Below are positions 1-34,600 of a stretch of 64,000 nucleotides of DNA, in pieces. Where the stretch lies: NCBI GenBank assembly GCA_037447605.1, contig CM074815.1, forward strand, positions 558,001 through 622,000. The letters run 5' to 3'. Position 1 is the stretch's first letter. Each line of letters begins with the position of its first letter. Under the pieces are notes generated by a model. It did not search any database. It was not told the origin of the DNA and worked only from the letters and a program-made list of their open reading frames with translations. Position numbers and translations under genes: made by a program. The DNA comes from Zygnema circumcarinatum SAG 698-1b (lineage: Eukaryota; Plantae; Zygnematophyceae).

Positions 1-734
1 TGGCGGCGGGCGAAAGGGAGCCGGTGTTCTTGATGGTGGGGGAGCAGCCGGGAGCATATCCATGAAAGTGATCTCGGCAGGTGAGTTCCCTGCTGCTGCC
101 TCTTTCCCCTTCCGGGCCTTCTCACTCGAGAGTCTCCGCATGCACACACGGGCATCATGTCCCGTGATCTGACAGAAGGTGCAGGTCCATGGTCCGCAAC
201 GCAGCCGCGGATTGTGAGTTAGGCCACAAGCCAGACATACGCCCTCCGGAACCCCTGCCTCTGTCATCCGACGGCGCAGATCGGCCCTGGCAGCTTCTCG
301 CTCTTCGGGTGTGCGATCGGAATAAGGAGCCCGATATCCTGGACGCGAGACATCTGGTATGTGAGGATTCACCGCTGGCTCGATGGGATGCGCCGGATCA
401 TGAGGGTATGGGGAAAGGGGAAGGGGCTTGGTTGTGCTGGCTATGGCCAGAGGCTGCACCACAGGGGCTGTCCGGCCGTCCTGAGCAGTGGCGCCGGAGA
501 AGGAAGGCTTGTTCCGAGCAGATGTAGCGTAGGGATCGAACAGCTGTTGATTCTGTGTCTTCAGGAACTGCTGGTAGAGTCGATCTTGTCGTGGATCTGT
601 AGCGTTCATGTAATGTGGTCTTACATGTCGGTTGCCTCTCTCTTGATCCTTCTGAATTCGCTCTGCCCTGTCTAACAATGCCTGGGCATCTGCTGGTGGG
701 TTGTCGCGCAGCTCACGATCCAGGTGGAGATCCT
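1..734 (-). mobile_element. LTR-retrotransposon Gag C-terminal fragment (nucleocapsid zinc knuckles); truncated by the N-gap and runs off the window edge
   Basis: Manual translation of the minus strand gives an uninterrupted frame (DLHLDRELRDNPPADAQALLDRAERIQK...) with CLACGLTHNPRLRC and a canonical CTFCQITGHDARVC (C-x2-C-x4-H-x4-C) knuckle. It is not in the ORF track because there is no stop inside the window. Confidence 0.75.
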
Positions 735-800: not shown

Positions 801-860
<60 letters not shown>

Positions 861-892
861 GCCCGTCCGTCCGTCCGTCCGTCCGTCTCAAC
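801..892 (+). repeat. (CT)n followed by (CCGT)n microsatellite directly upstream of the LRR-lipase ATG (repeated at 2794-2885)
   Basis: Directly visible; ends ...gtccgtctcaacATG. Confidence 0.95.
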
Positions 893-2783
893 ATGAAGAG
901 AAGGAAGGGAGTCCAAGCGCGTGAGATTCAATACAAGCAATGGCTGAAATCGTCGGAGGCCCAGTGGTCCTCTCTTCGGGATACGTTAGGAGGCCATTTT
1001 TCAAAAGAAGAAATCGAACTGGTCTCAGAGCTGCGGGAATGGCGAAAGAAGGAGATGCAGCACTGCCGTCCTGAGGAGGGGGCGGCTGTCGAATTAGCGG
1101 CAGAAAAACTGGCGGATTTGCTTTTGAATAGCCAATCCTCCGTTTCGACAGGATCTCTCAGCTTGAGGAGAGCCTATCTGAAGTCTCTGCCTGTTTATTT
1201 CAACCGGTCGGGTGACAGAATGGACGAGCTTGATCTCAACGGCTGCCATTTGGGAGTCTTTCCACCATTGAAGAATTGGTCATCTTTAAGGATTCTTTAT
1301 GCACATGGCAACAATTTCAAGGTTATTCCCAGAATTGAGCTGCCGCATCTCCAGACGTTGGACCTTGCCGACAACAAGATAGAAAAAATTATGGATCAAG
1401 AGATGCTGAGTAACCTGACTACCTTCATGGCGAGCAGCAATCAGCTTCGAGAATTTCCAGCGCCCATTCTTCAGTGGAGTGCGCTAGTAGAGCTGAGGTT
1501 GGATGACAATCAGATGTCATGTTTGCCAGAGAGCATAGCCGAACTGAAGCACCTTCAGACTCTATGGCTGAACAACAACTGCTTGAGCTCTCTGCCGGCG
1601 GAAATTGGTCAACTTAGTCGACTGAAAGAATTGCGTCTCGACCACAATGAGCTGACCTCCATCCCGGCCGAAATTTCATCTCTAGGGAAACTGGAACTGC
1701 TCGATGTGCGCAAGAACCTACTGCTCACTTTGCCAAGAGAGAAAAATCTCCGGTTGAGTCTGCGGCCACCGGGGCTAAGTAGTGGCTCTATCGCCCGAAA
1801 GACCTGTGCGGTCATTGTCGATGCTAATTCGTTGCTTGATGGTCCGAAATACCCGTTGGCATTTCAAGACAAGGAAGACTTGATTTCCTTCACTTCAAAA
1901 ATACATCGTGAATTCGAAATTTTTTGGAAAGAAGCGGAACGGGAGCCTGTGAGCAGCGCTGGGGGCCGCGTTATCGACTACTACAACAAACACATTTCCA
2001 AAATGTTGACGATGGAGGAAGCTGCGCTGCAGATGCTGGCCTCTTCATTGGTATATCTGGATGAAAAATTCAGCACCTACAAGGGCGACATCGAATTTAA
2101 TGTAACAGAAAACGTCCGCTGTGAATCTGTGAGTTGTTATGCGAAGAAGTACAGAATAAATGACTCCATTTGCCACGAAGAAGGGTGTGTTGCCTTCCAA
2201 TTGGTTCCACAAGGCGAGCAAGCAGGTCAGAAAGCCGACATTATTTTGTTTCGTGGAACCAAACCCAATGCGAAGTTTGCTCCGACGGGCATGAAGGCGG
2301 ACTTGAATCGGCATGCAATTGGGATGAAAGTGTTCAAAAGTGTACGAAAGTACATGCAAAAATGGATGGAGAACGCGCTACGACCTGATGTCGGTGGTGA
2401 CGGCACCAAGCTGGTGATAACGGGCCACAGCCTTGGGGGGGCTTTGGCAATGCATGCATTTGCGAGCATTGAGGAGCCGCTCCATCGGCAAAACAATGTG
2501 AAACTGATCACCTTCAACTCACCTGGCGTGGATAAAGACACCATTCAAAACAAAATGTGTGGTGGTGGAGTAGATGAAGGGGAACATCTGTATGGTTCGT
2601 CACGAGTGGGATATTGTGCACTACGCAGGAAAGCTGCAACCTCCAGGGGCCGTTCTATACACAGGGGATCATGTGGATAAGCCGTTAAGCTCTTTAGAGG
2701 CACTTGCTAAGTGCAAACTCCCAGTCTTGGAGCAATTGTGTAAATATCTACTCAGGTACTTTCGATCGGCTACATCACCTCCC
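893..2783 (+). CDS. Intronless LRR + class-3 (alpha/beta-hydrolase) lipase fusion, copy 1; frameshift near 2571-2574; 3' end lost in gap
   Basis: About 9 LxxLxLxxNxL repeats (e.g. LPAEIGQLSRLKELRLDHNELTS), then IILFRGT, ITGHSLGG (Ser at 2429) and TFNSPGV. The WDIVH segment continues in the +1 frame from ATG 2574. Confidence 0.8.
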
Positions 2784-2793
2784 NNNNNNNNNN

Positions 2794-2853
<60 letters not shown>

Positions 2854-2885
2854 GCCCGTCCGTCCGTCCGTCCGTCCGTCTCAAC

Positions 2886-4971
2886 ATGAAGAGAAGGAAG
2901 GGAGTCCAAGCGCGTGAGATTCAATACAAGCAATGGCTGAAATCGTCGGAGGCCCAGTGGTCCTCTCTTCGGGATACGTTAGGAGGCCATTTTTCAAAAG
3001 AAGAAATCGAACTGGTCTCAGAGCTGCGGGAATGGCGAAAGAAGGAGATGCAGCACTGCCGTCCTGAGGAGGGGGCGGCTGTCGAATTAGCGGCAGAAAA
3101 ACTGGCGGATTTGCTTTTGAATAGCCAATCCTCCGTTTCGACAGGATCTCTCAGCTTGAGGAGAGCCTATCTGAAGTCTCTGCCTGTTTATTTCAACCGG
3201 TCGGGTGACAGAATGGACGAGCTTGATCTCAACGGCTGCCATTTGGGAGTCTTTCCACCATTGAAGAATTGGTCATCTTTAAGGATTCTTTATGCACATG
3301 GCAACAATTTCAAGGTTATTCCCAGAATTGAGCTGCCGCATCTCCAGACGTTGGACCTTGCCGACAACAAGATAGAAAAAATTATGGATCAAGAGATGCT
3401 GAGTAACCTGACTACCTTCATGGCGAGCAGCAATCAGCTTCGAGAATTTCCAGCGCCCATTCTTCAGTGGAGTGCGCTAGTAGAGCTGAGGTTGGATGAC
3501 AATCAGATGTCATGTTTGCCAGAGAGCATAGCCGAACTGAAGCACCTTCAGACTCTATGGCTGAACAACAACTGCTTGAGCTCTCTGCCGGCGGAAATTG
3601 GTCAACTTAGTCGACTGAAAGAATTGCGTCTCGACCACAATGAGCTGACCTCCATCCCGGCCGAAATTTCATCTCTAGGGAAACTGGAACTGCTCGATGT
3701 GCGCAAGAACCTACTGCTCACTTTGCCAAGAGAGAAAAATCTCCGGTTGAGTCTGCGGCCACCGGGGCTAAGTAGTGGCTCTATCGCCCGAAAGACCTGT
3801 GCGGTCATTGTCGATGCTAATTCGTTGCTTGATGGTCCGAAATACCCGTTGGCATTTCAAGACAAGGAAGACTTGATTTCCTTCACTTCAAAAATACATC
3901 GTGAATTCGAAATTTTTTGGAAAGAAGCGGAACGGGAGCCTGTGAGCAGCGCTGGGGGCCGCGTTATCGACTACTACAACAAACACATTTCCAAAATGTT
4001 GACGATGGAGGAAGCTGCGCTGCAGATGCTGGCCTCTTCATTGGTATATCTGGATGAAAAATTCAGCACCTACAAGGGCGACATCGAATTTAATGTAACA
4101 GAAAACGTCCGCTGTGAATCTGTGAGTTGTTATGCGAAGAAGTACAGAATAAATGACTCCATTTGCCACGAAGAAGGGTGTGTTGCCTTCCAATTGGTTC
4201 CACAAGGCGAGCAAGCAGGTCAGAAAGCCGACATTATTTTGTTTCGTGGAACCAAACCCAATGCGAAGTTTGCTCCGACGGGCATGAAGGCGGACTTGAA
4301 TCGGCATGCAATTGGGATGAAAGTGTTCAAAAGTGTACGAAAGTACATGCAAAAATGGATGGAGAACGCGCTACGACCTGATGTCGGTGGTGACGGCACC
4401 AAGCTGGTGATAACGGGCCACAGCCTTGGGGGGGCTTTGGCAATGCATGCATTTGCGAGCATTGAGGAGCCGCTCCATCGGCAAAACAATGTGAAACTGA
4501 TCACCTTCAACTCACCTGGCGTGGATAAAGACACCATTCAAAACAAAATGTGTGGTGGTGGAGTAGATGAAGGGGAACATCTGTATGGTTCGTCACGAGT
4601 GGGATATTGTGCACTACGCAGGAAAGCTGCAACCTCCAGGGGCCGTTCTATACACAGGGGATCATGTGGATAAGCCGTTAAGCTCTTTAGAGGCACTTGC
4701 TAAGTGCAAACTCCCAGTCTTGGAGCAATTGTGTAAATATCTACTCAGGTACTTTCGATCGGCTACATCACCTCCCCCTCTTCAGGATCTCATGGAGGTG
4801 GTTTCCTATGCGCACACGGTTCCGGCTTTCGCGCTCCGCCAGATGCATGGACATGGACCTGTAATTTCTAAGAGGGTGGAACACAAAGAGGGTCATTGGC
4901 CCAGTGATCTCGGAAAGGTTTCCGAATATGTACGAACTCTTCATGAACTTGGCTCTATCTTTCCGAAATAA
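2886..4971 (+). CDS. Intronless LRR + class-3 lipase fusion, copy 2 (complete 3' end; same frameshift near 4564-4567)
   Basis: Same as copy 1. The C-terminal ORF 4567-4971 carries the remaining lipase motifs (MVRHEWDIVHYAG, candidate catalytic His in YAHT) and ends at TAA 4971. Confidence 0.82.
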
Positions 4972-5081
4972 GATCGAATCTCGAAGCGTGGCAGCTTTTG
5001 TCCAGGAGGGCTACCTTGTACTAATGACTGATTAACTGAAGCTATTATTATTGATAGAACTGGAAAGTCAACGTTACTAGC

Positions 5082-5324
5082 TGTAGCGAAACGCTACAGT
5101 CACCCCAAGGGGGAAGGGTTACTTAGAGCCCGGCGTGGCTTTATGTTTCCATCCAATGCAGTACCTAACGGTTAGGGCATCAGATACCCTATAGGACGAC
5201 GGAGGTCCTAGGTTCGAACCATAAGAACTGGTTCACCCGTGGGGCCGCCACATAATCTCTATGGGCCCCACGTCAGCGGCCAAGGTCCCCTCCTCTCAGC
5301 GTAGAGGAAGATCACGGACTAACG
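5082..5324. mobile_element. Probable LTR fragment (starts TGTAGCG), truncated by an N-gap
   Basis: TG start, palindrome TGTAGCG-aaa-CGCTACA, and position immediately 5' of a gag region. No second copy is present in the window to confirm it. Confidence 0.4.
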
Positions 5325-5361
5325 NNNNNNNNNNCGAACCCCCCCCCAGGCTGTAGAGGCA

Positions 5362-8300
5362 GTGGATGCATTAGGTCCTGGGGAAGGGGTTAGGCAAGCC
5401 ACTCCGGTGGCGTCGTCTTTTCCGACGCCCCAACCGGCTGCCGGAAGCAGCCGGCAGAAGTCCGGACCCCCTGGATTCTCCACGGGGGTGAGTCACCCCC
5501 ATGGGGGTGGCGAACCACCCAGCAGTGGGGGACCCCCGTCGGGGGCAGCTGCTGGCGGCGGAGGGGATCCCAGTCCTCAGACTGCTCCTCCGCAACCTAC
5601 TGAGGATGCCCGACGGAATCGGGCCAAAGTGGCCCCTCTTTCCTTTTGGGGCGAACATCCTACCACGGACTGCTCGATTGAGCAGTGGTTGGGTCAAACG
5701 AAGGGTTACCTTCTTTGCGACCAGCTGTCCCCCCTCCGATGGGTAAAGCTTTGCTTACCGACACTGAAGGAGCACATCTGCGTGTGTATGAGGGGCCTCT
5801 CCCGATGAGATTGGGGGCGATTGGGATAAGTTAGAGGGAATGAACTTATCAAACACTTTGGGGCCTTGGATCCCGGCTTGGAGGCCCGGGATAAGTTTCA
5901 GAACATGGTCCAAACCGGCAGCGTCAAGCAGTTTCTGCGAGACCTGCGACAAGTGGTGCCTCAGATCACCACTCACAAGCGGGGCCAGTGAGTTCTTTTC
6001 CGCCGAGGAAAGGCTTGAAGCCACACGAGGCGGCTAAGGAGCAACCCGCGGACTGCACGGCAGGTGGGACCCCGGCCCGACTTCTGGTTACGTACTTTGA
6101 TCACGGCCATTGATTCTGAACCACCGCCCTACTTGAGCGTCTGACCCTTCCGACTTGGCGAGGAGGTGAGGCGGCGTGGCTGGTCTTGAGAGAAGTGGGG
6201 AACCTCAGCTCCTTAGCGGCGCGAAGAACAAGCGAGCGGCGGAAGTGAACGCGCCCTATACCGCGACGCGAGTTGACTCGGAGGAAATGGAAGATGCGGC
6301 GGAGAGCAAGATGTTTCGGTTGCCTTGAGGGGCACAGGCGGGGATTGCCTCACGAACACCAAGGACAAGAAGGGCAGGGGCGGAAAACTTGCCCACCCGG
6401 CGGCTTAGGGGTCGTTGGTGGACATCTTGGAAACTTCAGGGGAGTCAGTTAGTCTGTGTTTGATGTACTCCCTTCTTCCATTTCTCTCTCCCCTGCCACT
6501 GTAGTGACTCCTTCTGGGTTTATGGATGTAGTGATGAATGGTGATTGGCATGTCTTTATCCTCAATGTCATGGGCGATGATGTTCTCATGCAATGTGCCA
6601 TGGATGCTTTGCATGTCATGGGAAACACCTCCCATATCCTTGCGCTGCATGTGCTGGTTCCTCAGCACATGGCAGTTCGCACCTTTCCCAGCGCCACTTG
6701 GCGGTTGGTGAAACAGTTGAGGAAAGGGCACACGTTGGTGCAGACGATGGAAGGATCCACCAGCTTGCTGGTTGGCTCACCCTACACATTGGTGTGGAGG
6801 ACGGCTCGTCCTCAACCTTCGCATATAGTGCGATCTATGTTCCACCTTGCCCATCGTGCCATGACCTTCATCGGGTCAGCCAATGGCCACCCAGCAGTTC
6901 TACTGCTAGATACTGGGGCAGATGCTAACTTTGTTAGTTCTGCGTTCACCCGGAGATGTGGGTTGACCACAGATCCCCATTCAGAAAGTGTTACTTTCGG
7001 GGATGGACGCAAGGGCCAGATCTCTGGTAGCGTCACACTCAAGATCAAGCTCCACTCCTACTCCGGGGCAGTCAAGTGTCTTCTAACACAACTGGCCCCT
7101 GGTACTGATGTTATTTTGGGGAGTGCTTGGGTTAACCATGGTCAAGCACAAATGAGCTTTTACGTCACGCGTTGCGTGCACTTGCGGTGGTGACGGGCGG
7201 CTTACACTTTTGTGAGCATCCGGCTGGCCCATCCAGCGGCTGCTACTCACCCAGCATCTGCCTTTCGGCTATGCGGTGGCCATGATTAGAAGGTTGCACC
7301 TTGTTCATGGTGCATGTCATGGCAGCCACTGAGGATGTTCATGACGAAGATCAGGAATGGCAGATCACATCTACGGGATGTGCTCTCGGCCGTTCCACCC
7401 AAAATCCAACCTTTGTTGGATGAGTTCAGGGATGTTTTCCCTGACGACCTTCCAAGAGGGTTGCCACCATCTAGAGGTAGGGCACACAATCCTCTTGAGC
7501 GAGGCATAAAACACGCCTTGGCGTGATCTACTCGGTTAAGTCAGAAGGAAACCGAGGAGATCGCAGCGATTGGCAACTTCGTGAAAGTTTGGATAGGAGC
7601 AGTCGAGCCCCTTTGGGGGCGCCCATGCTGTTGTTGGGAAAAAAGATGGTTACGTTGAGGATGTGCATTGATTATCGCGCACTCAACAAGATCACCGTAA
7701 AGAACCGTTTTGCTTTACCACGTATTGATGATCTGTTGGATCGTCTTCACGGCGCCAGAGTGTTTACTTCACTCGATCTTGCTCAGGGGTACCATCAGAT
7801 CCGCGTCACGGAAGCTGATGTGCCAAAAACTGCGTTCCGGACGCCGATTGGTCATTTCCAATATAAGGTGTTGCCCTTTGGATTGACTAATGCTCCGGCG
7901 ACTGTCCAGGCTGTGATGAACGAAAAGTTCATCGGCATGGACGAGTCTGTATGGGTTTACCTCGATGATATCCTTGTCTTCAGTAAGACAGAGGAGGAAC
8001 ATCTTGAACACGTTCGGAAAGTGTTTGAGACCCTGAGGAAACACCAATTTTATGCCAAGAGGAAGAAGTGTCACTTCATGCAACGTGAGTTGCTTTATCT
8101 TGGGCATATTCTCAATGATCAGGGCCTTCGGCCAGATCCTGCCAAGGTTTCTGCGGTAGAAACTTGGGCGCCACTTAAGTGACACGCACCGGTTGAGGGT
8201 CTTTTACGGGCTTTGCGAATTATTTTAGGTAAGTTCATCAGGGTTTAGTAAAGCTGGTTTACCCTTGACTAATTTGACGTTAGGTGTCCTTTACATGGAC

Positions 8301-10264
8301 CCACTGAATGCCAAAGTGCATTCGAGAAGGTGTCGCCATGCACTTATTCACAGCACCCACTCTCAGGTTTGCTCGGGCCGTCCAAACCTTGAAGTGGTTT
8401 GTGATGCTTGGGATTACCGCCTTGGAGTCGCGTCTTGTTTTCCAAGATGGCCAACCTTTACTTGGCGTATGAAAGCATAAAATGAATCGGCGCAACTATT
8501 ACCGCGAAACGAGGAAGCGCCCAGAGTGGTGCATACGAGGACATGGCGTCGCTGTTGTTAGAGGGCAGCGATCCTGGCCCAGTCGCGACCACCGCCCGGC
8601 CCGGCGTTCCTCTCCAGCCGCGAGACCTGTCATAGCAAGCGAACGCAGCTGATGCAGGATTCCCTCCAAAGGTTTGTACCCGGTAAACGGTTTTATCGGC
8701 GGAAGAATTTGAATACTTGGCGGAACCCTTACGGTAGGCTGACCTCGGCGCATCTTGCACGGATGGTGCTGGCTAAAATGCGACTCGAGTGTTAGTGGAG
8801 CGAGATGTGAGAGGTGAGGGCGGCCAACCCAGTCCGTCTCGGTATGCTTTGTCACCAAGATCCCTCCACGGTGTAGCGATCAACCCTCTGCTTTCTCTCA
8901 CGATCTTGACGGATGATTGGGAGGGTATACTATTGATCCTTTGTTCTGGATGGCCAAGGTAATGGCTATAAGGACAAAGTGGTGTCTAGGACGGATTTTG
9001 GTACCGACGTGATTGTGGTCGTGCCCAAGGCGGAGATGCGGCGGCTCGTGCAGGTGAGCTACATGATCCCTCACGTGCCGAGGGTCACATGGGAGTTGCC
9101 AAAACCCGTGAGGCCGCGCTCAGGGATTACGGTGGCGGCCTGGACTCGAGGGGATGTGGCGTATGTCTTCGCTTGTCAACTTGTCCAGCGAAACAAACCC
9201 CGCCTTTGGCGGGGATCACGGCCGGTACAGCCCCTCACACCTCCTTTTTAGGAATGGGGCGGTGTGGGTATGGACTTGATCACCAGTCGCTGCAGCTGAC
9301 ACCTGCGGGGGCATGGCTCCATCCTGCGTCTTTGTCGATCGGCTGGCAAGATGGTGCATTTTGCACCAACTCTTGGAAACATTTGGGGCGGCGAAGTTAC
9401 GGTTGTATGTTGACAAAGTGTGGAGCGGCATGGTCTTGATCCAAAAATTGGTAATGCGGCCAAGTGATCCACGATTCACGGCCATTTTTGGGCCGAGGAA
9501 GTGCTCAAAATAGATTGGGACCAAGCGGTACGTTAGTCTGACTTTCCACCCGCCAAACCGATGGCGGGCGGAGCGGGTGAGCGGGGATCTGGAGGGGATT
9601 ACCTCGGCATTATGTGGGATTTACCCGGATGGGTGGAATGACTGCTCCCGGTGGCGAAATCGCCATCCAATAATGCTTTCAGCGGGAGTCCATCCCGGTA
9701 CCACCCCTTTCTTCGCGAACTTTGGCGGCATCCTCTAAATCCCTGCAACCGAAGGGATCAGCCCACGATAGTGGAACATGAAGCGTCCACGAGAACCCCG
9801 TCCTTGGAAGGCGAGAGGTGATGGGACTCCAACCTCCTTGATCCCGGATCTTTTACATCCGACTAATATGCGAGGAGGCGGCTGCGGAGAGCCCCGCGGC
9901 GGGGCCACGCTGGCAACCCGATCGCGACAAAAGGCCTATGCTGACCGTCACCGTACCCAACTCACCTTCAACGAAGGCGATGAGGTGTTGCTAAGTACGG
10001 CGAACTTGAGACTCAAAGCTTATGGCGGAACACGTAAGCTGTGGCCCCGCTTCATCGGACCTTTCAGGGTCGTGAAGCGAATCAATGATGTCGCTTACAG
10101 GTTGGATTTACCATCCCACATGAAGGTGCATCCGGTCTTTCATGTGGGTTTGCTAAAGGTCTACCGTAGCGATGGGAGGATCCAGCCACCTCCCCCACCA
10201 GTGGAACTTGAGGGTGAACTTGAGTATGAAGTTGAAACCATTCAAGCCCACCGTCTTGTGAGAA
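5362..10264 (+). mobile_element. Degenerate Ty3/gypsy chromovirus internal region: gag - protease - RT - RNase H - integrase - chromodomain
   Basis: Gag-like KVAPLSFWGE...IEQW (5362-5808); protease LLLDTGADANF (~6900); RT RMCIDYRALNK...LPFGLTNAPA...VYLDDILVFS (7523-8182); RNase H EVVCDA (~8395); integrase fragments QRNK, GMDLIT, VFVDRL, DPRFT (9050-9520); KLWPRFIGPFRV...VHPVFHVGLLK and chromodomain EYEVETIQAHR (9950-10264). Many frameshifts. Confidence 0.92.
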
Positions 10265-10309
10265 NNNNNNNNNNGTTCAACGGGGGAAGCGTAAAGGGGC
10301 GAGGGTGAC

Positions 10310-11590: not shown

Positions 11591-12511
11591 ACTCAGACGT
11601 CACATTTTCCCACAGAGAACAGCGCACTAGCGCCCTGTTCAGACTGTGACCAAATCTACTGAGGACCGCCGACAACGGCTAAGGACCGTACAGTGTACTA
11701 TGTGAGCCTATACCCCTATTGTACACAACACTTTCTTTCCTCCTCTTGCCTCCCCTCTTCCTTCCCCTCCTCGAGCTCTCCTCTCTCTCGCCCACTCCTT
11801 TCTCCCACCCCTCTCTCACTTTCTCCAACTCTATATCTCTCTCTTTCTCTCGCTCTCATTCTCTTTGTGCAGAGACTATGGGGAATCCTGAACACGCGAG
11901 CGGCAATGGGGCTCCAAGTGGCCGACATTCCTCCGCGGTTTTTAGCAGAAAAATTTGGCAGTGAGCGGAATGGGGGGAGGGCTGTAGGGAGGAGAGGAGG
12001 AGAGGAGGAGGGAGGGAGTGAGAGAGCTCGGCAATGCGAATTGGTTCTTTCCTTTGGTTTAGTTGTTGGTAAGGGGAATTTCTTTTTTTAATGATTTTAG
12101 ATAGATAGTCATGATTTTTCCATTTTTTCTTGTTTTTTTCTATTTATCGTTTTGTAAATATTTTCAGCTTGGAGTGAAATAGGAAAAATTCTTCTTGGAG
12201 GGGCAAACGGAGGGAGATTGTATATTGTACATTGTTTCGTCAGCAGGCACAGACCAGTTGGCACACTGTGCACAGTACTGAAAAAAAAAAGAGGGAAAGG
12301 AAAAAAAGGAAATGGGCTATGAATGCAATTTCAGCATGCACATTTTGGCATGAAGTCGCGCATTCAACAAATTCCGGTTTGCTGTACAAGTGAAGGGAAC
12401 TCGACGCTTCCAAAACCTCACGAGCCCGTCAATTTCTGAACCCTAAAAAACCGTCTGAAAAGGAAGAAAAAATAGAAGAAAATCGCCTGTACAGATGCAT
12501 CCCCCCTGGAC

Positions 12512-15500
12512 CTACAACCTGGCCATAGACTGCAGAGCGTCCTTAGCCTTCAATTTTGTTTCAATGTCGAAGTTTTTTCCAATGTAGGCCTTCAAATATT
12601 TAATTCCCGGAACCACATTCGAAGCATTGAGCGGCTCCCTCTGCGCCGACGCCAAGAGGTGTCCGTACACGTCCCCGTCGTACAGCCCAATGGCGGACCC
12701 TGCAAGGAACTTAGGGTTCAGAAGTTAGAGATTTCGGGGTTCTAGGCTTCAGGGTTTAGGGTTTTAGGAGTGAGTGGAGAGAGGTTTTCAGGGTTATGAA
12801 GGGTTGAGGGTTTCTCAGGGTTTTGCCCGGTACTCGAGTTTTAGGGTTGTAGGGTTTTGAAGGGTCTAACGAACTTAAAAGTGGTCTTGAAGGGTACTAA
12901 AATTGAAGTCTTGCAATTCCCTCCAAGAACGGGAAACACATAAACAAAACTCTCAAAATCCTTGTTTTCTTTCCCTTTTTTTTTGGAATGGAGTCGAGAC
13001 ATTTAGGGCTAGGGCTCTGGGGGGGTTCAGACTCGCAGGGGATTAGGATTGTTCAGGCAATTTATTTTTTTAATTTTAATTTCATTTTACCAATTTAGGG
13101 TTGAGGGCCCCTCCCTCCCTCACCCAGGTAGTGGTCCGAAAAGTGGAAGGCTTCTTTCAACTGAACGGCCGACTTCCGCACCTGCAAATAAAATGACCTT
13201 TTTAGATAATTAATACATGAATAAGGTAACTGAGGAAGAGACAAAGTGTGTGTGTCTGAGAGAGAGAGAGGAGAGAGAGAGAGAGGAGAGAGAGAGACAG
13301 TGTTACGTCATCCTATGAAATCCTGCACTTCAATTTCTGCATGGTGGATTATTCTCGCAAACTTTTGTCTTGCTTGTCTACGCATTACAATAATAGGGCG
13401 TGGTGACGCAAGCTTCCAACTCAATGTGACGTCATCACACGTGTTGTGGTTAGAGGTTCATGTTCGTCATATTGTCCGCCTCAAGCTCGAATATTGCACG
13501 GATACAGTGCCATGTACGGAGAACCCATGAACAACAACAAATTGCAAATGTAGACATGCAAAGAATAGTATGTGAGTTGCCATGCATCCATTGGCGAACC
13601 CACAAGAACTCCATAGTGAAACAGGAACATGTAAATGGCAATGCTGATATGTATAATGAAGGAAGGATACAATTTGTTTGTGGGAAAGATGTGAGGTAAG
13701 AAAGACCCTAAGACTCTAAGCAGGCGCATTGGGCGGTCAAGCGACCCCTCATTATCTTACAGTAACGCAGCGCTCTATCCTAAGGAAAAAAAAAACAAAG
13801 AAAAACGAGTGCAGGACGAAGGTCGTCCTGAACCCAAAAAATATGTCCATGGGACAAAAAAGAAATGGTCACCGGTCCTAAAATTGAAGTTCTACTCATG
13901 GCCTCCCCTCTCCCTCCCACCCTCCCTCTATCTCTCTCTCTGCACTCCTACACATCAACATCGTCTATGGTCCTCGCTCCTTCCCCTTCCCCTTCATCCT
14001 TCCACTTCCACTTCTTCAATTCGTTCAATAAGAGCTTCCTTTTCTCGTCGCGGCTCTTCGGAACCTTTTCAGCCTCTCCCTCCTCCCTACTCGACTCCTC
14101 ATCCTCCTCCCACCCATCGTCTCTCTCTCCCCTCTCCTCCCCCCACTGCCTCACTTCCCCTTCCTCCGCACCCACCCTCCTGGGCCTCCTCTCCTTCAAA
14201 CTCGTCGCCTTCAACACCACCTCACCATGTCCCCTCCTTCTCTCTTTCCTCCTCCCTTTCCTCCTTCCTGAACTCTGCGAAACAGAAGAGTCCCCCTCTA
14301 AGGAAGAGTCCGAAAACCCTCCCACCCTCGAGCCAGTTGAATTACCTCCTGGAGAGACTCTCCTACAGCTGAACTCCGCTTCATGGCCATCCCAATGCCT
14401 TCTAAGAAGTCTGTCAGACTCAGATCGCTTCAGACTCCTCTTCACAGGTGTGGCAGATATCTCCACCACATGCCTCTCCTCCTCTTCTTCGTCCTCCACA
14501 TCATCCTCCGTCTCAACCTCACCACCTTCTGAAGAGAGAGAAGAGTCCCCTCTCTCTCTTGGAGACCAAATCGAGCCTTTCGCCTTTCTATGTCTAAGCT
14601 GAGGTTGAACTTGCCTTGCCTCCCTTCCGACAGAGCGAGGAGAGCCTACAGAAGAAGAGCTTCGGAAGCCTCCAGAATGCTTTGAAGGAGAAGGAGATCT
14701 CAAGTGCAGTCCTCCACTTTCAACCAATGGGCGCATTGCCTGAAGAGATTTCGGAACTTCATTCTCTCCAAGTCTAGCAAGTCGGACAGCTCCTCGTCTA
14801 CTAACTCCACCTGCTGTCACATCTACTGGAGGTTGAAATGCTCTACCACCACCCCTCTCCCTCCCCCCCTCTCTCCCTCCACCCCTCCTCTCTCTCCTCT
14901 GCAGTTGCATCCGAGGAGGAGACACCCCATACCCATCAAAGTCATCATCCTCCGCTTCAGGGGAAACATACCCATCAGAGAGAGACTGCCTGTGTGGTCT
15001 TCTCCTCCTCATTCCTTTCACACTCCTCTCCGCATATTCACCATTTGCTTCAAAGTCTGCAAATACCTCCCGAGAAGCAATACCCTGTGCGGATACTCCA
15101 CCCCTCTTCTTTCCCCCTTTCTGAGAAAACGAAGATGACTGAAGAACAGCCACTTCCGCTTTGCGTGCAACCTCCACCACTTCCGTCGCAAATGAGAAAT
15201 CTGGCCTTCTATGTTTAACTAAAGGACGAGGGGAAATTTCAGTCACATCTGCAAATGACTCCGCCTTTCTATGCCTCTTAGGGTTTGTAAGACGCGGCGA
15301 AATTTCGGGTGGTGAGAAAGCCTCCAGGGCGGGCGGGGCTGGGATCGAATATTCACGGGCTGCCCGAGCCGCTTTTTTCCTATACACAGAGAAGATAATT
15401 TCTTCAATGTCTTCCTGAGTGAGCGCTCCCCCAAAGTGCGTTAAAGAAGGAGGCGGAGCCTCTCTTCCCTCTCCGTCCTCCTCTACGGAAATGTACCCGT

Positions 15501-16308
15501 CTGAAAGCGACTTTCTATGCGACCTCCGAACTGTTGGGTCTCTCGGCTTCCTCACATACTCCTTATACTCAAAAACTGGTCTCTGTGTCAGTTGCTTTTC
15601 CGTTAGCTTCCTCTTCATCAGACCCTCTCTAGAGTGATCGAAAGTTCGGGAAGTCCCAAACTCGCTCTGATCAACATGGTTCAGATTACCCCCATCGTAG
15701 CCCATCCCTGCCTGCTGGTTATATACAGCCCTGCTTCCCTGCTTCTCCACAAACCCATCCGTCCCATTAAACCCACTAGTAGATGCAATTTCGAGCCCCA
15801 CAACCCCTCGCTCCTGAACCCTCTCCCTCCTCTCTCCGTACAATGCCGACCGCCAGCCGGCCCTCCCCCTCCCTGCCGTCTCCGCCTCCCACGTGTCCAC
15901 CGCACCCTTCCTCCCCGCCCCTCCCCCATGCTGAGCCGCACTCCTCCCCCCTCCCCGAGAAAAAAAGGCCTTCCAAAATTTTTTCCTGCCCAACTTCTCC
16001 TCCGCCGACGAGGTTCCAAGCTCCGGAAGTTTCTTCAAATCCGAAACCTTCGCCGTGCCGCTCCGCGATTTGAACCCAGAAAATAAACTTGAAATGAACC
16101 TCCTGCCGAGGGAGGGGCTCCCTCTGCTTGAAGTGACTGAAGGAGTGGGAGAGCTGTCTCTCTTCCTCACTCTCTCCCTCACTCTCTCCCACTCTCCCTC
16201 CTCCCCCGGAACTGCCTCTGTGGCCTCCATCCTACCTCTCTTTCTCCATGCATCCACCTCCCAAGGCTGCAGCGCCATGGCTTCACCTCCTTCTGACCCT
16301 TTACCCAT
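12512..16308 (-). CDS. Uncharacterised ~870-aa protein: long disordered S/R/E/G-rich N-terminus plus compact C-terminal domain; 4 exons (16308-13952, 13779-13761, 13181-13124, 12699-12512)
   Basis: GT-AG junctions with matching phases give a continuous C-terminus DDVDVIERCVTVRKSAVQLKEAFHFSDHYLGSAIGLYDGDVYGHLLASAQREPLNASNVVPGIKYLKAYIGKNFDIETKLKAKDALQSMARL*. Confidence 0.75.
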
Positions 16309-20805: not shown

Positions 20806-24402
<3,597 letters not shown>

Positions 24403-28527: not shown

Positions 28528-28592
<65 letters not shown>

Positions 28593-28653: not shown

Positions 28654-31600
28654 ATGTTCTCCGGGGGGAAGGCCCGGCATAGCGCCACGTGGCAAGACCA
28701 GAGCGCTTCCCCCAAGCCGACATGGCCGTCGGAGGCGAGCGTGTCCCCTTGGGCCCTCCCCGGGACGCCGCCGGGAACTGCAAGGACGCCCCCGCCCGCC
28801 AGGTTGCGTCTCCATGCTCTCAGTTTTGTTATCAGTTCCACGGCCGTTGGCCGTTCCTTAGGTTTCTTAAGGCTTTCTCATTTCCATCGTCGTGACAGCT
28901 GGCACGGACATTCTTATTTTTCGTGAATTTTATTGCAGAGGAGAAGATTGCATTCTGAACAATCTATATCGCAGTTTTTATTGTTGTTTCACTTTCAATT
29001 TTTTTTTTAATATTTTCTATTTTTGCACCACGAGGTTTTATTTGAGCATTCAAAGCTTGTGTTTTATGAAACTAGAGGTTTAAGAGGAACCCTGCAAACC
29101 TGCAAACCTGCAAACTTGGTTGGCAGGTTTTTAAGTTTCTTTATCGTGAGGTATCCTTGTTAATGCAGGTTTAATTTCGACCCCATATATATACGAAATC
29201 TCATGGTCATCTCCATGGAAAATGGCGTCATTATTGATACCCATGTAGTGATATATTGCTTGTCAGAAAACTTGTGAATCTTCCTACTGGCTGGAGTTGA
29301 GAAAGGCTTCTCCTCCTCCTTCGTCTATCTTCATCTTCTCCACTGACAGCTTATCTTTTGTTTTTGAGATATATTCTCTGTTATTGTGCTGCATCGGCGA
29401 CATGTTCTGTACTGACGGGGGCCCTCGCACCTTCAGGACGGGGCCCGCTGTGCAGGAGGGCATGGCCCGGCCGGAGCAGGAGCCAATCAGAGTGTGCCAC
29501 CTGCCCCAAGTTCTGCGGGAGGACAGAGAGGAGGCGCTCAGCAACTTGGAAATAGGTATTCACACTGTTTTTGGCCAGCATTCTCTCCCTCCCTCCCTCT
29601 CTCTCAAAATCCCTCTCTCCCTCATTCTCTCTCTCGTCCTCCCTCCGTCCCTCCAACTTTCTTGGGGATGCGCGAGGCAATTCAAGTGTCCGATGGAGGA
29701 GAGATGATTGAATGAGGTTTAATTAAATGAGCAACTTTAAGGGCATTCGGTGGCGGATTCTGTGCAACTGGTTTGGAACCATGAGTTTGGAGCTTTAGGG
29801 AGTCCAAGCTAAAGTTTTGCTTGACCTCTTCTCTCGAAACTTTACCGACCAAAAGTTCAACTGACCCTACAGAACATTCCATTCTACGAAAAACTATACC
29901 TAGCACTGCCATTAGTAGCAAATTCACATGTGCAAGCATTTTTCTTCACTTGACCCTCCCACACTTTCCCATTCCTTATTGCGTTGCTGCTTTCAGAGGA
30001 CTTTGAAGAGATCAACGGAAGCATCGACTCCGCCACAGGAATCGCATGGGTTCTATTTGGCTCGAAACTTTATACCTGGAATTATCTCTCCTCTCCAAAT
30101 CCACGCCATTGTACTGTCTTAAAATTTCCAGGAAGTCTCACCAAAGCAGATACAGGTGGCAGCATTATAGCAGTCCACTGGTTTGTTAAAATAATTGCTC
30201 CTTCTTCCGACGTTTCTGATACAATCAGCAACGGATTTGGCTCCTTCGCTGCTTCGTTCTCCTCTCCAATACGTCAAGAATCCTTTGCTTTCGCTACAAG
30301 TCCAACTGTAGGGTCTGAAGGACGGGATTCTAAGGAAACTCCCAGAGGGAAATCTGAAGGGCAAGCAAATTGCTCCTCCATGGGGAGAAACGTGGGGGTT
30401 GTTGCGATACATAAGCGGACCATGGCAGTAGTATATTGGCCTGATATTGCAAAGGAAGAGGGAGGAGGAGCTGTGCTTGGGCGAGTCAATGAAGAATGGA
30501 CAATTCCCCATGGCTCGGGCTTAAGGCCAAGCGGAAGTTTTGGCAGTAGAGTGAGGCACAGTGACTGCGTGACAGCTGTGATAGCTATCTGCAGGAGAGC
30601 GGGAGAGAGCGAGACAGAGGGAGACCTCAATATGAGTAGTGGCAGCAAAGGAGTAGTGCCTGAGGGAGAGAACGAGAGGCTCTCTCCCACCAATGGGCTT
30701 GTTGAGGGAGGCCTGACTAACGGACGACTGACAGCTGGCAACGAAGTGGTCGGAGATGAGCCCATTGGCTGCATATTAGTGGTGGGATGCAATTCTGGAG
30801 AGCTTTGGAGGATTGATTGCTCTCCCTATGGCATCAAAAGAGTCAGACTTGGGAGGGAAACAGCGGACTATTCAAACTCAAGATCTGCCACTTTCGGAAT
30901 GCTTGCTTTTGAGAGAAGCTCTGAAGCTCCTGCTACTATTCGGAGCATAGTGCTCTTGCCGGAAAATTCCGCTCTCCCTTCTGTCATATCTGACTCAGAC
31001 TTGATGATGACGAAGAGTAATGAGAAGCAGGAAGGAGAGAGAGAGGGGAGTGGGGTTTCTGGATTAGCGCTTTTTTCAGGGTTTCGACAGAAGAGCAAGC
31101 AGAGGAAGCAGCAGCAGGTTCAGCAGGTTCAGCAGGAGGAGAGGGAGAGGAAGGAGAAGGAGAAGCTTCAGGAAGCAGCAGAAGATATGGAGAAAGGGGG
31201 GAAATCTATGTGCAGATTTTTGCTGCTTACAGCAGCAGGTTTGGAAGCTTGGACCCTAAAAATGGAGCCTGGAGGAAAGGCTAGTCTAGCTTGGGCCTAT
31301 GATATTTTGGGAGATAAAGCAGTGCATATGGACCTTGCAGGGCAGAAGCAGGTCTGGCTATTGGACTTAGCTTTAGCAGCTGAAGGAGATTCAGTTATAG
31401 TTCTACTTGCTTCTCTATGTAAAGATAGGGCTGCTGTGGGAGGCTCTCAGACCCAGTATTGGCTTCTCTCCTTCATTCTACCTCCCAAGTCTTCTCTTCA
31501 GCCTCTCACAAAGCCTCTCACACAACCTTCGCAAAGGCCTCTCTCTCCCCCTCCCTCCCCTCCCACCTCCCGTCCCTCCACTCCCTCCATTCGGCCCCTT

Positions 31601-34600
31601 TCCAGCTCGAGACTGGTAGCCAATAATTCCTCTCCTTCCAGCCCATCCAGAGATAATGCAATTTCTCCTGCCTTTAAGCTGGAAAGAAAGTGGCCTGCAC
31701 GTGTATTTGTACCCAAAGCTCGAGTAGAAAATGAAGAAAATCTCCTTCTTTTGAAGCTACATATAGGAGGAAGGCCCAATGGTTCCGCCCTTATTTTAGC
31801 CAGTGATGGGACTGCTACAGTTACATTTTTTGATAAGGGAGAGCCTTGGCTTTACCAAACAGACCCAAGCTGCTCTTTAGGAAAAGTTTTGGGGGTCGGA
31901 TTTTTGCCTCGTAGAGCTCAAAATGATGAAGGCTTGCATGCTGCAGTTTCCGTTGGGGCGGACGGATTTCCGTTGTCTGAGTTTCCAGGAAGTAGTCAGT
32001 TGAAGGAGAAGGAGAGGGAGACGGAGAGGGAGGAAGTGGGAGGGGAGTGGGTGCTGCTGACAGAGAGAGAGGGAGTGTGGGCTTTATCAGAGCAGATGAT
32101 TCTTGATATGGCAGTGGAGCCTTTTGGAAGGCCTCACAGTATTCATAGGCAGAGCCATAAGAAGGTTTTTGGGGTGCTGGAGAGTGGAAAGGAAGAGGGA
32201 GAGGGAGAGGGAGAGGGAGAGGAGACCATTGGTTTGACCCCTCGGAAATCCCCGAGGCTTGCCATTCCTCCAAGTCGGATAGTGGGAGGAGGTCCAATAG
32301 AGGGAGAGGAGAGAGAGGGGTTTTTACAAGATGAAACCAATGAGGGCAGAGGTTATAGGAATGCAAGATCAGGCACGGGAGGGGCAATTGCTCTCACTAC
32401 CACTACCACTACCACTTTGCAGAGGCAAGGAGAGGCTGAAACGTTAGTTGAGAGAGTGTTGGGAGAGGCTGCGGGAGAGAGAATGCAGGAGAGCCTGAAG
32501 TGGCTGAGAGAAGTTGGAGCTTTCGAGGTAGAAGGGAGAGAAAACATCTTGGCTCAAGCGAGTCGAGCCATAATCGATACTCTGCCCAAGCACTGGGGGG
32601 GGGGACACATGTGGGAAGGGCAGTTAGCGGCAGTTTCAGTTCAGTTGGGAGAGAAGGAGCGGAGGCACAATCAGTATCTTGAGTTTCTCTCCCGTTCGGG
32701 TTGTCACCAAGAGCTCCTTTTGCTGCAAAGTAAGAATCAATGCTTAAAATTTTCAGTTTTTCTCTTTCATTTTTGTATTTCTTTAATTTTTCAATCTTTT
32801 AGGATTCATCTGAAGCATTTCTAAGGTTTCCTGGAGGCTCAGGTTGACCAGGAAATCTCAATGCTCTCAAAATTCATACTTTCCTTTAAATCGGATTCAA
32901 CTGTTTTTTGGAATAAATTCAGTAATTATTCAATACTAATACTACGAACATTTTTTTTTTCTTTCCTCCTTAACAGAATCCGCCCTCACTGCCATCATGG
33001 AAGACGGCGAAAAACTCGCGGCTTCTATTTCTCTCCGAGAGTCCCACAACCAGCAGGCCAATCAGATCATGCCACGTGGCAGCCCTCTGCAGCTGACCAC
33101 CACTAAGAGCGTGCCAAGTGTCCTCTGGGAGGCCATCCAGCTGGCAGGTGGCACTATCCGACGCTCAAATGTGCTCCTAATGGGGAAGGAAGAGGGAGAA
33201 GTTTTTTTCACGCGAGTCTCCCAAATAAGTGAACTGTTTGCGGCCGTACAGCTCCATGCAGGCGCTGTGATTGGCCGAGAGCCTTATCCGCAGCAGCAAG
33301 CGGCCAATGAGGACTCGCCAGCTGTCAATCGGGAGCTCTCCTTGCCATTGAATGTCCAGGTGGAGAGGTTTTGCCAACTTTCTGCGGCTCTTAAAGGAGC
33401 AGTTGCAGCTGCGAAGGAGTACAGGGAGAGACACTCAGTGTGGTATCCTCTCTCTGAGGGAGAGGAGGAGGAGGGAGGAGGAGGAGGAGGAGGAGGAGGA
33501 GGGAGAGGGGGAGGAGGAGGAGGAGGGTGGGAGGGGAGGCAGGAGCCATGGCTTTGCAGTGGACCATTGAGGAGAGGATTACGGAAGCTTGCAAACCTTT
33601 GTACGGAGCTAAGGTATGGGGGGGTTTAGTGGATTCCCATGCAGAAGTTTTTGCGGCATGCTTGATGTTACACAGTTTATGTCTCACTATCTGTTGTATC
33701 ATATCATGCTGAGATAATGTGGTCCTCTTCAAGCTATCCCTACTCTCAACTTGACCCCTAAGGAAGCAATGAAGGAAGCTACAGTTGACTTGACTTTGAC
33801 TTCGACGTTGAATTCGGATTGACTTTGACTTTGACTTTGACTTTGACCTTGTCCTTGACCTGCAGGGCCGAGGCTGCCCAGTTTCAGCACTCCCTCGTCC
33901 CCTCTCTGAGCAGCATCTTCCGCCCTCTCTCTCACTTGCTGCTCGATTTGTTCGCGGAAGCTTTGGATGAGAGGGAGAGGAGGGGAGAGCCCTTTCAGGG
34001 TTTGGCGGGGGAGTACGGAAAACTGAAAGATGAGCTTCTGAAGGAGATGGTCTCGCACGCGCGGGAGGAGGCCCTCCGGTCAGCACAGGTACAAATTTAA
34101 AAAAAAAGAAATAGGAAATAACTTTTTGACATTGTGGTATGTAAGGAACTTTTGTGGGTTTGCCTTGAAATAAACCCTATGATACCCCGTTTTGTGCATT
34201 CACTCTCTAACGTGCTTTCAAGACTGTACAAACAAGGCTATACAAGACTATACTACACAAACATGGGGGTCCCATTCTATATTGTAAAACAACAGTGTGC
34301 TAGAAATGCAGAAGTTAACCAACAAAATGGTCTTCTGAATTCCTATCTTTTCTTCCTCCTGCAACAACTCCCCTTCATCTTTTCTTCATCTTTTTTTTTT
34401 CTTCATCTAAACACGCAGATTAGCGGAGACAAGAGCCAAATCCGAGTCAACCTTATGGCCCAATACAATGAAGTCGTTTCCATTGCCAGACGCCATTGCG
34501 CGTATGAAGCAATGCTCACTATGTGTGAGGAATTGGAGGCATGGGATGTGTTGAGAACCCTCATGAGGGAGCCAATGGGGAGAGGGGGAGAGGGGAGGTT

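Follow-up and report, generated by a model that had tools for sequence, protein, structure and literature searches.

A frameshifted gene in Zygnema circumcarinatum that joins eukaryote-type LRRs to a class-3 lipase whose nearest relatives are bacterial

The window analyzed here is a stretch of 64,000 nucleotides from Zygnema circumcarinatum SAG 698-1b (contig CM074815.1, positions 558,001 to 622,000). Close to its start lies one LRR-lipase gene, which runs from the ATG at 2886 to the stop at 4971 and is preceded by a duplicate whose ATG is at 893 (Table 1). The preliminary description had placed a single 2.1-kb CDS at 893-4971; a gene of this kind is indeed present, but that span also takes in the duplicate block and the CDS is broken in frame. 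The CT/CCGT leader that had been described ahead of the gene was recovered as a (CT)n and (CCGT)6 tract. CT/AG microsatellites also occur elsewhere in the window, at 28534, 21139-22839, 54405 and 60417. At the gap of Ns at 2784-2793, the sequence on the left breaks off within the 3' part of the gene, whereas that on the right begins in its 5' leader, and thus the two sides are not continuous coding sequence; a 699-aa ORF spanning this gap was therefore rejected as an artefact.

Table 1. Features of the LRR-lipase locus (positions in the window; aa numbering from the ATG at 2886)
Feature	Position	Strand	Basis or remark
Most likely redundant copy of 2794-4776 (leader and first ~630 codons)	801..2783	+	Stops short of the catalytic His
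5' leader microsatellites, (CT)n at 2794-2853 and (CCGT)6 at 2856-2879	2794..2879	+	
N-terminal region, ~105 aa, four predicted helices, without family match	2886..3212	+	AF2
Eight LRRs of 21-23 residues, aa 110-290, SHOC2/LRRC40/ROCO-like	3213..3755	+	Pfam
Linker, ~72 aa (aa 291-362)	3756..3971	+	Envelope of lipase-family hmmsearch begins at aa 363
Lipase part 1, frame 0	3972..4568	+	Lipase_3, 1.5e-9; alignment with bacterial family
Lipase part 2, frame +1, with ~45 aa insertion between Asp and His; stop at 4969-4971	4567..4971	+	
Frameshift point	4569..4570	+	11 nt absent relative to a high-depth paralogue; 4-nt microhomology flanks the missing stretch
Premature stop, frame 0	4671..4673	+	Product as written 595 aa, without Asp and His
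Repeat of very high copy number immediately 3' of the gene, probable edge of the LTR element	5018..5324	.	

The N-terminal helices were predicted by AF2 at aa 2-31, 38-55, 60-82 and 88-102, with pLDDT of about 70-79. Neither the whole protein (E<=1) nor aa 1-110 alone (E<=10) matched the TTSSLRR cap (PF12468), and a PDB sequence search with aa 1-110 also returned no match. Thus, of the helical N-cap proposed in the preliminary description, about 105 helical residues are present, but the likeness to the TTSSLRR cap found no support. Look-alikes of this region in a structural atlas were the N-termini of eukaryotic LRR proteins, which can be taken as a lead only, and a sub-threshold match to HEPN_Swt1 (16.7 bits versus 27.5) was considered to be due to chance. 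The arc of LRRs that follows had been estimated at about nine repeats; eight were counted, starting at aa 110, 132, 153, 175, 198, 221, 244 and 267. They were matched by the Pfam models LRR_4 (PF12799; 2.1e-18, 66.4 bits versus 27), LRR_8 (PF13855; 47.8 versus 27) and LRR_14, and the best PDB matches of this part were Leptospira LIC11098, LRRD1 and SHOC2. The linker had no detectable homologue and its Pfam matches were at chance level only. No NB-ARC or NACHT NTPase was found among the Pfam matches at E<=1, and the PADLOC anti-phage models gave no match at E<=0.01 for either piece of the lipase gene or for the bacterial relative P0121. In the AF2 model of the frame-0 piece, which was built from a mixed LRR and lipase alignment, the LRR part had pLDDT of about 30, and therefore the model says nothing on LRR-lipase packing or autoinhibition. 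A word search with the whole protein was dominated by generic LRR matches and was uninformative on the fusion.

The lipase domain is encoded in two frames. Frame 0 contains the family-specific MEEAALQ helix (4005-4025), FRGT (4242-4253) and GHSLGG (4416-4433), the last of which includes the codon of the nucleophile Ser513 (4422-4424). WDIV (4600-4611; Asp codon 4603-4605) and AHT (4810-4818; His codon 4813-4815) are found in frame +1, which opens past a stop at 4564-4566. The Ser, Asp and His all match conserved columns in the alignment with the bacterial lipase family. Accordingly, the class-3 lipase originally recognized by FRGT, GHSLG, WDIV and AHT holds with all of its motifs, and the comparison with Pfam Lipase_3 (PF01764) that had been proposed gave 38.3 bits for the frame-0 piece (cut-off 22) and 40.8 bits for aa 370-560 alone. 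The lipase part of the frame-0 AF2 model had pLDDT >90 over aa 322-555. On the other hand, the gene is not continuous, as had been assumed, because the frameshift at 4569/4570 parts the Ser from the Asp and His, and no single chain translated from the gene as written contains the whole triad. A paralogue contig (X1 record 7, X5 record 22), with a depth of 875 in X1 and 430 in X5 versus about 60 and 20 for the window copy, matches 4383-4569, then has 11 extra nucleotides and keeps the frame. An intron was rejected as the cause of the frame change because homology confines the change to 4548-4576, a stretch without any GT..AG interval long enough to serve (the sole one of 3n+1 length is 10 nt). 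Since the product of the gene as written has neither the Asp nor the His, the window copy is most likely a pseudogene in decay, at a site rich in retrotransposons.

Both copies in the assembly derive from the same data, and so the frameshift could instead be an error of the assembly or consensus: the region is rich in paralogues, which may have been collapsed or mixed, and the gene would then be intact in the organism. We regard this as possible but somewhat doubtful. It would agree with the tiny contigs at the locus (1983 and 2531 nt), with the otherwise clean ORF, which has no further stops and retains the Ser, Asp and His, and with the fact that none of the exact unitigs listed crosses 4569/4570. 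However, three DNA studies list no indel relative to the window and the bins around the site have depth; moreover, an 11-nt loss accompanied by a 4-nt microhomology resembles a slippage deletion and is unlike a typical read error.

Homology with the lipase family begins at aa 363, continues past the frameshift and reaches the C-terminus. An exhaustive phmmer search against 1.84e9 representatives identified 91 lipase relatives, the best of which had an E value of 3.7e-20 and 37% identity, and none of the 91 contained LRRs. The named relatives were from Margulisiibacteriota and from an unclassified 'bacterium', whereas most were unlabelled metagenome proteins. Gene contexts were compact and prokaryote-like for all five relatives with contigs long enough to judge (P0121, P0123, P0162, P0143 and P0138); the 2.3-kb contig of a sixth, P0135, was too short for judging. 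A genome scan, limited to a pattern from a six-sequence alignment, added Myxococcota, Planctomycetota (Pirellulaceae) and cyanobacteria, which does not bear out the earlier suggestion of a link to Chlamydiae. The hallmark of this bacterial subfamily is a helix, EEAALQ..LA..LAYL, ahead of the core, and its members occur either by themselves or in fusions with PLD, TPR, kinase or eCIS-core modules. A metagenome scan with the window lipase gave no match, and region-restricted and profile word searches gave almost none, the word index being blind to relatives of 30-38% identity. Viral contigs matched the core lipase only (aa 81-187, E about 1e-6), and there was no sign of a giant-virus route. Thus, the horizontal acquisition proposed in the preliminary description agrees with the lipase half being nearest to rare bacterial proteins: a bacterial source for this half is plausible, and the direction of transfer is inferred. 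The phylogeny that had been proposed as a check placed the window sequence inside the family on a branch of median length, but with no supported node around it.

Alternatively, the lipase subfamily might be an old eukaryotic or algal one, inherited vertically, which looks bacterial either through missing algal proteomes or through bacterial uptake from eukaryotes. We consider this rather unlikely, although the sampling is clearly incomplete, given that neither protein collection contains the alga's own paralogues. No match above 40% identity was present in the protein libraries, from which the proteome of the alga, and probably those of its close relatives, are absent, so that the lack of eukaryotic homologues argues only weakly for transfer. 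The fully host-like composition and the lack of resolution in the tree would also fit vertical descent. However, no eukaryote-labelled relative was found although the libraries include NCBI and UniRef eukaryotes. In addition, solved plant and fungal class-3 lipases reached only E 0.06-0.25 in a small database, compared with 1e-20 for bacterial proteins in a database of 1.8e9, and the bacterial members come from several phyla, branch deeply and differ in their fusions.

The gene is best explained as one member of a multi-copy, intronless, lineage-specific algal family, in whose proteins a helical N-terminus is followed by eight LRRs of the SHOC2 type, a linker and a class-3 lipase with a Ser-Asp-His triad. 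Contigs aligned to 2.4 kb at 90-100% identity numbered 111, 337 and 67, counts that include the high-copy repeat at 5018-5324. None of the runs listed with the gene is recorded as RNA, and run X7, of unrecorded kind, contained mostly paralogue-like pieces. The summed contig depth of the repeat was 1e4-1e5, compared with about 60-100 for the gene; a tRNA scan of 4900-5400 found none, and a degenerate Ty3/gypsy element with protease, RT and integrase lies downstream of the gene, with a gag fragment upstream. The GC content of the gene (0.49, with GC3 of 0.55) is close to that of host ORFs (0.50 and 0.46-0.53, respectively). The absence of introns had been set against a window in which nearly all host genes were thought to be intron-rich; this is not evident, as the ORFs of a Nup133-like gene run without interruption for 946 and 483 aa.

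The duplicate itself is identical to the gene over its whole length (801-2783 versus 2794-4776, 0 mismatches over 1983 nt, 100% identity), and a gap of Ns directly precedes each copy (735-800 and 2784-2793). The depth of exact unitigs inside the duplicated block was 31-76 in X1, 66-140 in X2 and 18-24 in X5, compared with 69, 85 and 20, respectively, in the unique 3' end (4802-5067), so that the block was similar in depth to the unique end and not doubled in any of the three DNA studies. Because the copies are identical, bounded by gaps and no deeper than the unique 3' end, the block at 801-2783 is most likely a redundant contig that the scaffolder put ahead of the real gene (2794 to ~5000). 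A genuine and very recent tandem duplication, with a truncated copy at 893-2783 followed by the full one, would be in keeping with a multi-copy family and with the two copies in the assembly. It is nevertheless very unlikely in view of the perfect identity over 1983 nt, the start of both copies exactly at a gap edge and the undoubled depth. The locus is thus a warning that the assembly has redundant contigs and that the LRR-lipase family includes decayed copies, and therefore the number of copies, and any claim that one of them is intact, need checks at the level of reads.

The layout had also been likened to that of the IpaH, SspH, SlrP and YopM effectors, and the entire LRR-enzyme fusion might then have come from a bacterium, as a gene resembling those of type III effectors. 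NCBIfam models of T3SS LRR effectors did match with E values of 1e-11 to 1e-22, but their scores (44-78 bits versus cut-offs of 450-1243; for example, SspH2 45.4 versus 1243, SlrP 43.7 versus 1113 and XopAC 77.6 versus 450) amount to generic LRR similarity. Some bacterial lipase members are located near T6SS genes or have an eCIS core domain; P0121 is three genes from DotU and IcmF. A fold match to the T6SS lipase 9cys had a Z score of 10.7. PF26363 (Tle-like phospholipase) is precomputed for the relatives P0123 and P0135, and is absent from the local Pfam matches of the window protein, although that copy of Pfam may not contain the model. None of these T6SS features bears directly on the algal gene. 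Against effector transfer stand the absent PF12468 cap, the repeats of 21-23 residues, whose type and best PDB matches point to SHOC2, LRRD1 and Leptospira LIC proteins and not to IpaH or YopM, and the lack of LRRs in all lipase relatives. The likeness is thus not supported, and we regard such a transfer as extremely unlikely. Bacterial contamination mis-scaffolded into the assembly is hardly credible at all. The gene has no introns, bacterial-like lipase relatives and flanking gaps, but each of three separate DNA studies of the organism gives it a depth like that of a gene, and the same runs contain many diverged paralogues. Moreover, its contig (2794-5324) passes into the very high-copy repeat of those runs, its CT microsatellites and composition are host-like, its top bacterial identity is only 37%, and its scaffold is eukaryotic, with the Nup133-like gene and an LTR retrotransposon. 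The preliminary description had likewise argued against a pure contaminant.

Taken together, a single locus with a redundant contig, carrying a frameshifted copy from a multi-copy algal LRR-lipase family with a bacterial-derived lipase, is moderately probable as a joint account. The alga most likely acquired the lipase from a bacterium, and long ago, because the composition of the lipase gene now matches that of host genes; the lipase would then have been joined to eukaryote-type LRRs. From the window copy, 11 nt that separated the codons of the catalytic Ser and Asp would have been lost. For intact paralogues, the likeliest mechanism would be that the LRR arc binds a protein or ligand and thereby positions or releases the lipase, whose substrates might be membrane or storage lipids and whose role might lie in defence, cell death or lipid signalling; the ligand-gated lipase of the preliminary description remains a hypothesis. 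It is even conceivable, but quite improbable, that the intact paralogues form an innate immune or cell-death system without NB-ARC, in which the LRRs act as the sensor and directly control a lipase of bacterial derivation as the executioner, and the frameshifted copy is birth-and-death debris of a fast-evolving receptor cluster. In that case, a single protein would serve as an alternative to the NLR-EDS1 scheme found in land plants. More generally, if the family is functional, a streptophyte (green-lineage) alga would have made a protein for recognition and lipase activity from a bacterial enzyme and a eukaryotic LRR, which would also offer a simple two-domain protein for assaying LRR control over an enzyme.

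Comparison with known systems places each half of the protein among familiar relatives. The closest to the lipase half is the rare bacterial Lipase_3 subfamily (P0121-P0140; Myxococcota, Planctomycetota, cyanobacterial and Margulisiibacteriota MAGs; partly PF26363 'Phospholipase-like'), which is collinear over about 300 aa at 28-38% identity, with the EEAALQ helix, FRGT, GHSLGG, Asp and His aligned. However, its members are proteins of 340-400 aa without LRRs, or the fusions mentioned above (PLD, TPR, kinase or eCIS-core), whereas the window protein adds the N-terminal helical region, the LRRs and the Asp-His insertion of ~45 aa. Fungal class-3 lipases share the Ser-Asp-His order and the fold: the AF2 model of P0121 (pLDDT 82.9) matched A. 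niger FaeA (2bjh) with Z 17.4 and Rhizomucor miehei lipase (4tgl) with Z 16.9 (rmsd 3.1-3.7 Å, about 200 residues). These fungal enzymes are secreted, consist of a single domain and differ in sequence (14-17% identity; E 0.25 in the sequence search).

The LRR half resembles SHOC2, LRRC40, plant PIRL and ROCO proteins in its LxxLxLxxNxLxxLPxxI repeats of 21-23 residues, but those proteins have no lipase; matches to SHOC2 (E 3e-54), LRRC40 and cyanobacterial COR proteins have scores inflated by repetition and do not imply orthology. The IpaH/SspH/SlrP/YopM effectors likewise place an enzymatic domain C-terminal to LRRs, but the window protein has a different repeat class and neither the TTSSLRR cap nor, among its Pfam matches, a NEL domain. 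No description of a layout that combines LRRs with a class-3 lipase was found in the literature; the fusion itself is real, as originally proposed. EDS1, PAD4 and SAG101 have a class-3 lipase-like fold (Z about 11) and gave a weak 47-residue match around GHSLGG (E 0.06); the relation is at the superfamily level only. The EDS1 family has no LRRs, and Pfam shows no EP domain in the window protein. In plants, EDS1 works downstream of TIR-NLRs, as part of a heterodimer that senses nucleotides. The bryophyte HNL NLRs, which have the order alpha/beta-hydrolase-NBS-LRR with a central NB-ARC (PMC3352924), likewise unite LRRs with a hydrolase fold within the green lineage, but in the window protein the order is LRR-lipase and no NB-ARC was detected by Pfam. 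If functional, the algal family would bear on how lipase-like modules of the EDS1/PAD4 type and the hydrolase-NLRs of liverworts entered plant immunity.

The preliminary description had placed one intronless coding sequence of ~2.1 kb at 893-4971. This interval contains two blocks that are identical at 1983 of 1983 positions, each directly preceded by a run of N. On the left side of the second gap lies a 3' part of the coding sequence, equivalent to 4776 and short of the catalytic His, whereas on the right side the (CT)n/(CCGT)6 leader starts anew. Hence the sequence is not continuous over this gap, across which an ORF finder had drawn an ORF of 699 aa that was rejected as an artefact. Public contigs of three DNA studies under the same organism label contained the LRR-lipase stretch. 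Exact-match unitig depth was compared between the duplicated block and the unique 3' end (4802-5067) in three DNA studies: 31-76 against 69 in X1, 66-140 against 85 in X2 and 18-24 against 20 in X5. Because a real second copy would give nearly double depth and the depths were equal, the duplicate was probably produced by assembly, with the first block a small redundant contig put into the scaffold. One gene probably remains, from ATG 2886 (from which residues are counted) to the stop ending at 4971.

Features of the LRR-lipase gene and its surroundings
Feature	Position	Strand	Remarks
Gag-like open frame	1-734	-	~244 aa, both ends open; CCHC zinc-knuckle-like motif C-x2-C-x4-H-x4-C
N runs	735-800, 2784-2793
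Duplicated blocks	801-2783, 2794-4776
LRR_4, LRR_14, LRR_8, LRR_1	aa 104-296		Pfam; LRR_4 2.1e-18
Lipase_3	aa 470-551		Pfam; 1.5e-9, 38.3 bits, cut-off 22
FRGT, GHSLGG	4242-4253, 4416-4433		frame 0
WDIV, AHT	4600-4611, 4810-4818		frame +1
High-copy repeat	5018-5324
Degenerate Ty3/gypsy-type LTR retrotransposon	5335-10300	+	gaps 5325-5334, 10265-10274; domains in different frames
Aspartyl protease	6456-7190	+	Ty3/gypsy
Reverse transcriptase	7523-8179	+	Ty3/gypsy
Integrase SH3/C-terminal domain	9778-10264	+	Ty3/gypsy
786-aa ORF	13948-16308	-	0 Pfam matches at E<=0.001
AG dinucleotide repeats	21139-22839		nearly all of ~1.7 kb, runs 21296-21793 and 22440-22817 among them; several spurious long ORFs, both strands
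Nup133-like nucleoporin gene	29984-32824, 34134-35585	+	unbroken ORFs of 946 and 483 aa

The combination of LRRs with a class-3 lipase was borne out by Pfam and by all four lipase motifs. A motif scan counted eight repeats, each 21-23 residues long (first residues 110, 132, 153, 175, 198, 221, 244 and 267), instead of the ~9 proposed. The closest solved LRR structures were Leptospira LIC11098, LRRD1 and SHOC2, and the top database matches of the protein were LRRC40, SHOC2, plant PIRL and cyanobacterial ROCO proteins. As to the suggested TTSSLRR-like helical cap, four helices were indeed predicted by the structure model in the first ~105 residues, but PF12468 was absent even at E<=10; this region had no Pfam family and no sequence match in the PDB. 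A sub-threshold HEPN_Swt1 match at 2886-3215 (residues 8-77; 16.7 bits against a cut-off of 27.5, E 0.009) is probably due to chance. NCBIfam models of SspH2, SlrP, XopAC and similar effectors scored 44-78 bits against cut-offs of 450-1243, which amounts to generic LRR similarity. Therefore, the IpaH/SspH/SlrP/YopM-like layout proposed earlier is unsupported and was rejected.

The coding sequence had also been taken as intact. However, frame 0 holds the N-terminus, the LRRs and the first two lipase motifs and stops at 4671-4673, whereas the remaining two are in frame +1, which opens only past a stop at 4564-4566 and closes at 4969-4971. Alignment with relatives confined the switch to 4548-4576, between '...TIQNKM' and 'NICMVRHEWDIV'. 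A paralogue contig of ~1960 nt, with depths of 875 in X1 (this copy ~60) and 430 in X5 (this copy ~20), agrees with 4383-4569, then has 11 letters beyond the window's before re-joining, and is in frame thanks to them. The 11-nt stretch absent from this copy is bordered by a 4-nt microhomology, as would be expected of a slippage deletion. It is likely that the frameshift is real and the copy a pseudogene. An assembly error at 4569/4570 appears unlikely; among the contig matches listed, none had an indel relative to the window in any run. An intron is excluded, because the sole GT..AG span of length 3n+1 in this interval is 10 nt. With the frameshift, this copy as written cannot give an active enzyme, as judged from its reading frames, and the locus is a probable pseudogene with an assembly duplicate.

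The view that the gene is not a pure contaminant gained support from its surroundings. The same scaffold carries the Nup133-like gene (Nucleoporin_N 2.5e-8; Nucleoporin_C 6e-4, below threshold), with whose ORFs the GC (0.49) and GC3 (0.55) of the LRR-lipase gene are in line, and CT/AG microsatellites are frequent across the window. The gene-bearing contig passes directly into the high-copy repeat. In three DNA runs the contig depth of this repeat summed to 1e4-1e5, compared with about 60-100 at the gene. An LTR fragment had been suspected nearby; a Ty3/gypsy element lies 3' of the gene, and the gag-like frame is probably a fragment of another retroelement, so that transposable-element debris lies on both sides. 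Contamination is thus excluded for practical purposes. ARAGORN found no tRNA in the repeat, despite a GGTTCGAACC-like stretch. Nearly all host genes had been described as intron-rich; the unusually long unbroken ORFs of the Nup133-like gene show that they are not uniformly so here and make the intronless state of the LRR-lipase gene less striking.

Residues 300-557 were compared exhaustively by phmmer with 1.84 billion cluster representatives. Lipase relatives numbered only 91 at E<=1e-3, of which 18 reached E<=1e-10 (best E 3.7e-20, 37% identity); the top ones were metagenome singletons. Five relatives (P0121, P0123, P0162, P0143 and P0138) had compact, prokaryote-like gene contexts (RecG, GreA, CheX, SMR and others); the contig of a sixth (P0135), at 2.3 kb, gave too little context for a judgement. 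Named relatives were a protein from a Margulisiibacteriota MAG and another given simply as 'bacterium'. When species-representative genomes were scanned in a pattern-limited way, lipase matches came from a Myxococcota MAG (E 2e-23), Pirellulaceae, and Microcoleus with other cyanobacteria, and none from Chlamydiae, to whose lipases the domain had been likened. Homology is collinear from residue 363 to the C-terminus and extends past the frameshift; Ser, Asp and His fall in conserved columns, and the aligned part includes the family-specific helix MEEAALQ...YLD. The window's lipase has ~45 additional residues between Asp and His. When 46 domain sequences were put into a quick maximum-likelihood tree, it fell within the family, with median branch length and no supported sister. 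Since the nearest relatives are bacterial, from several phyla and on deep branches, and no eukaryotic relative was seen among the matches in protein collections with few algal sequences, descent of the lipase half from bacteria is plausible and favoured. The organism's own paralogues were absent from both collections (no match >40% identity), so algal sampling is poor; for this reason, and given the tree, a bacterial origin falls short of proof. There is no sign of a bacterial source for the fusion itself, and its LRRs are of the type common in eukaryotes and cyanobacteria.

Bacterial members are stand-alone proteins of 340-400 aa or occur as fusions with an eCIS core domain (P0147), with PLD domains (P0137, P0138), with TPRs (P0141) or with a protein kinase (P0143), and P0121, the closest bacterial relative, lies three genes from DotU (TssL) and IcmF (TssM) homologues (8001-9086 and 11855-14939 of its contig L001). 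These fusions and this context hint at a family with delivered or polymorphic phospholipases among its members. In intact paralogues, the most likely mechanism would be that the LRR arc binds a partner and then positions or de-represses the Ser-Asp-His lipase/phospholipase. A putative role in defence or cell death is favoured by indirect points: this is a multi-copy family embedded in transposable elements, decayed copies are among its members, and its bacterial relatives are joined to modules for toxin delivery or to other enzymatic modules. PADLOC models gave no match.

The architecture had been called unfamiliar. Full-text literature searches brought up no description of an LRR-class-3-lipase fusion, and LRRs resembling the window's occurred in 0 of the 91 lipase relatives; it is real, apparently undescribed and assembled from known parts. 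Solved plant and fungal class-3 lipases were hardly detected by sequence from the window's lipase (EDS1 E 0.06). The AlphaFold model of P0121 (pLDDT 82.9) matched A. niger feruloyl esterase A and Rhizomucor lipase (Z about 17), plant PLA1 (about 15), EDS1 (about 11) and a T6SS lipase effector (10.7). The nearest described idea to the fusion is the hydrolase-NBS-LRR (HNL) class of liverwort NLRs, which differs in domain order and contains an NB-ARC (PMC3352924).
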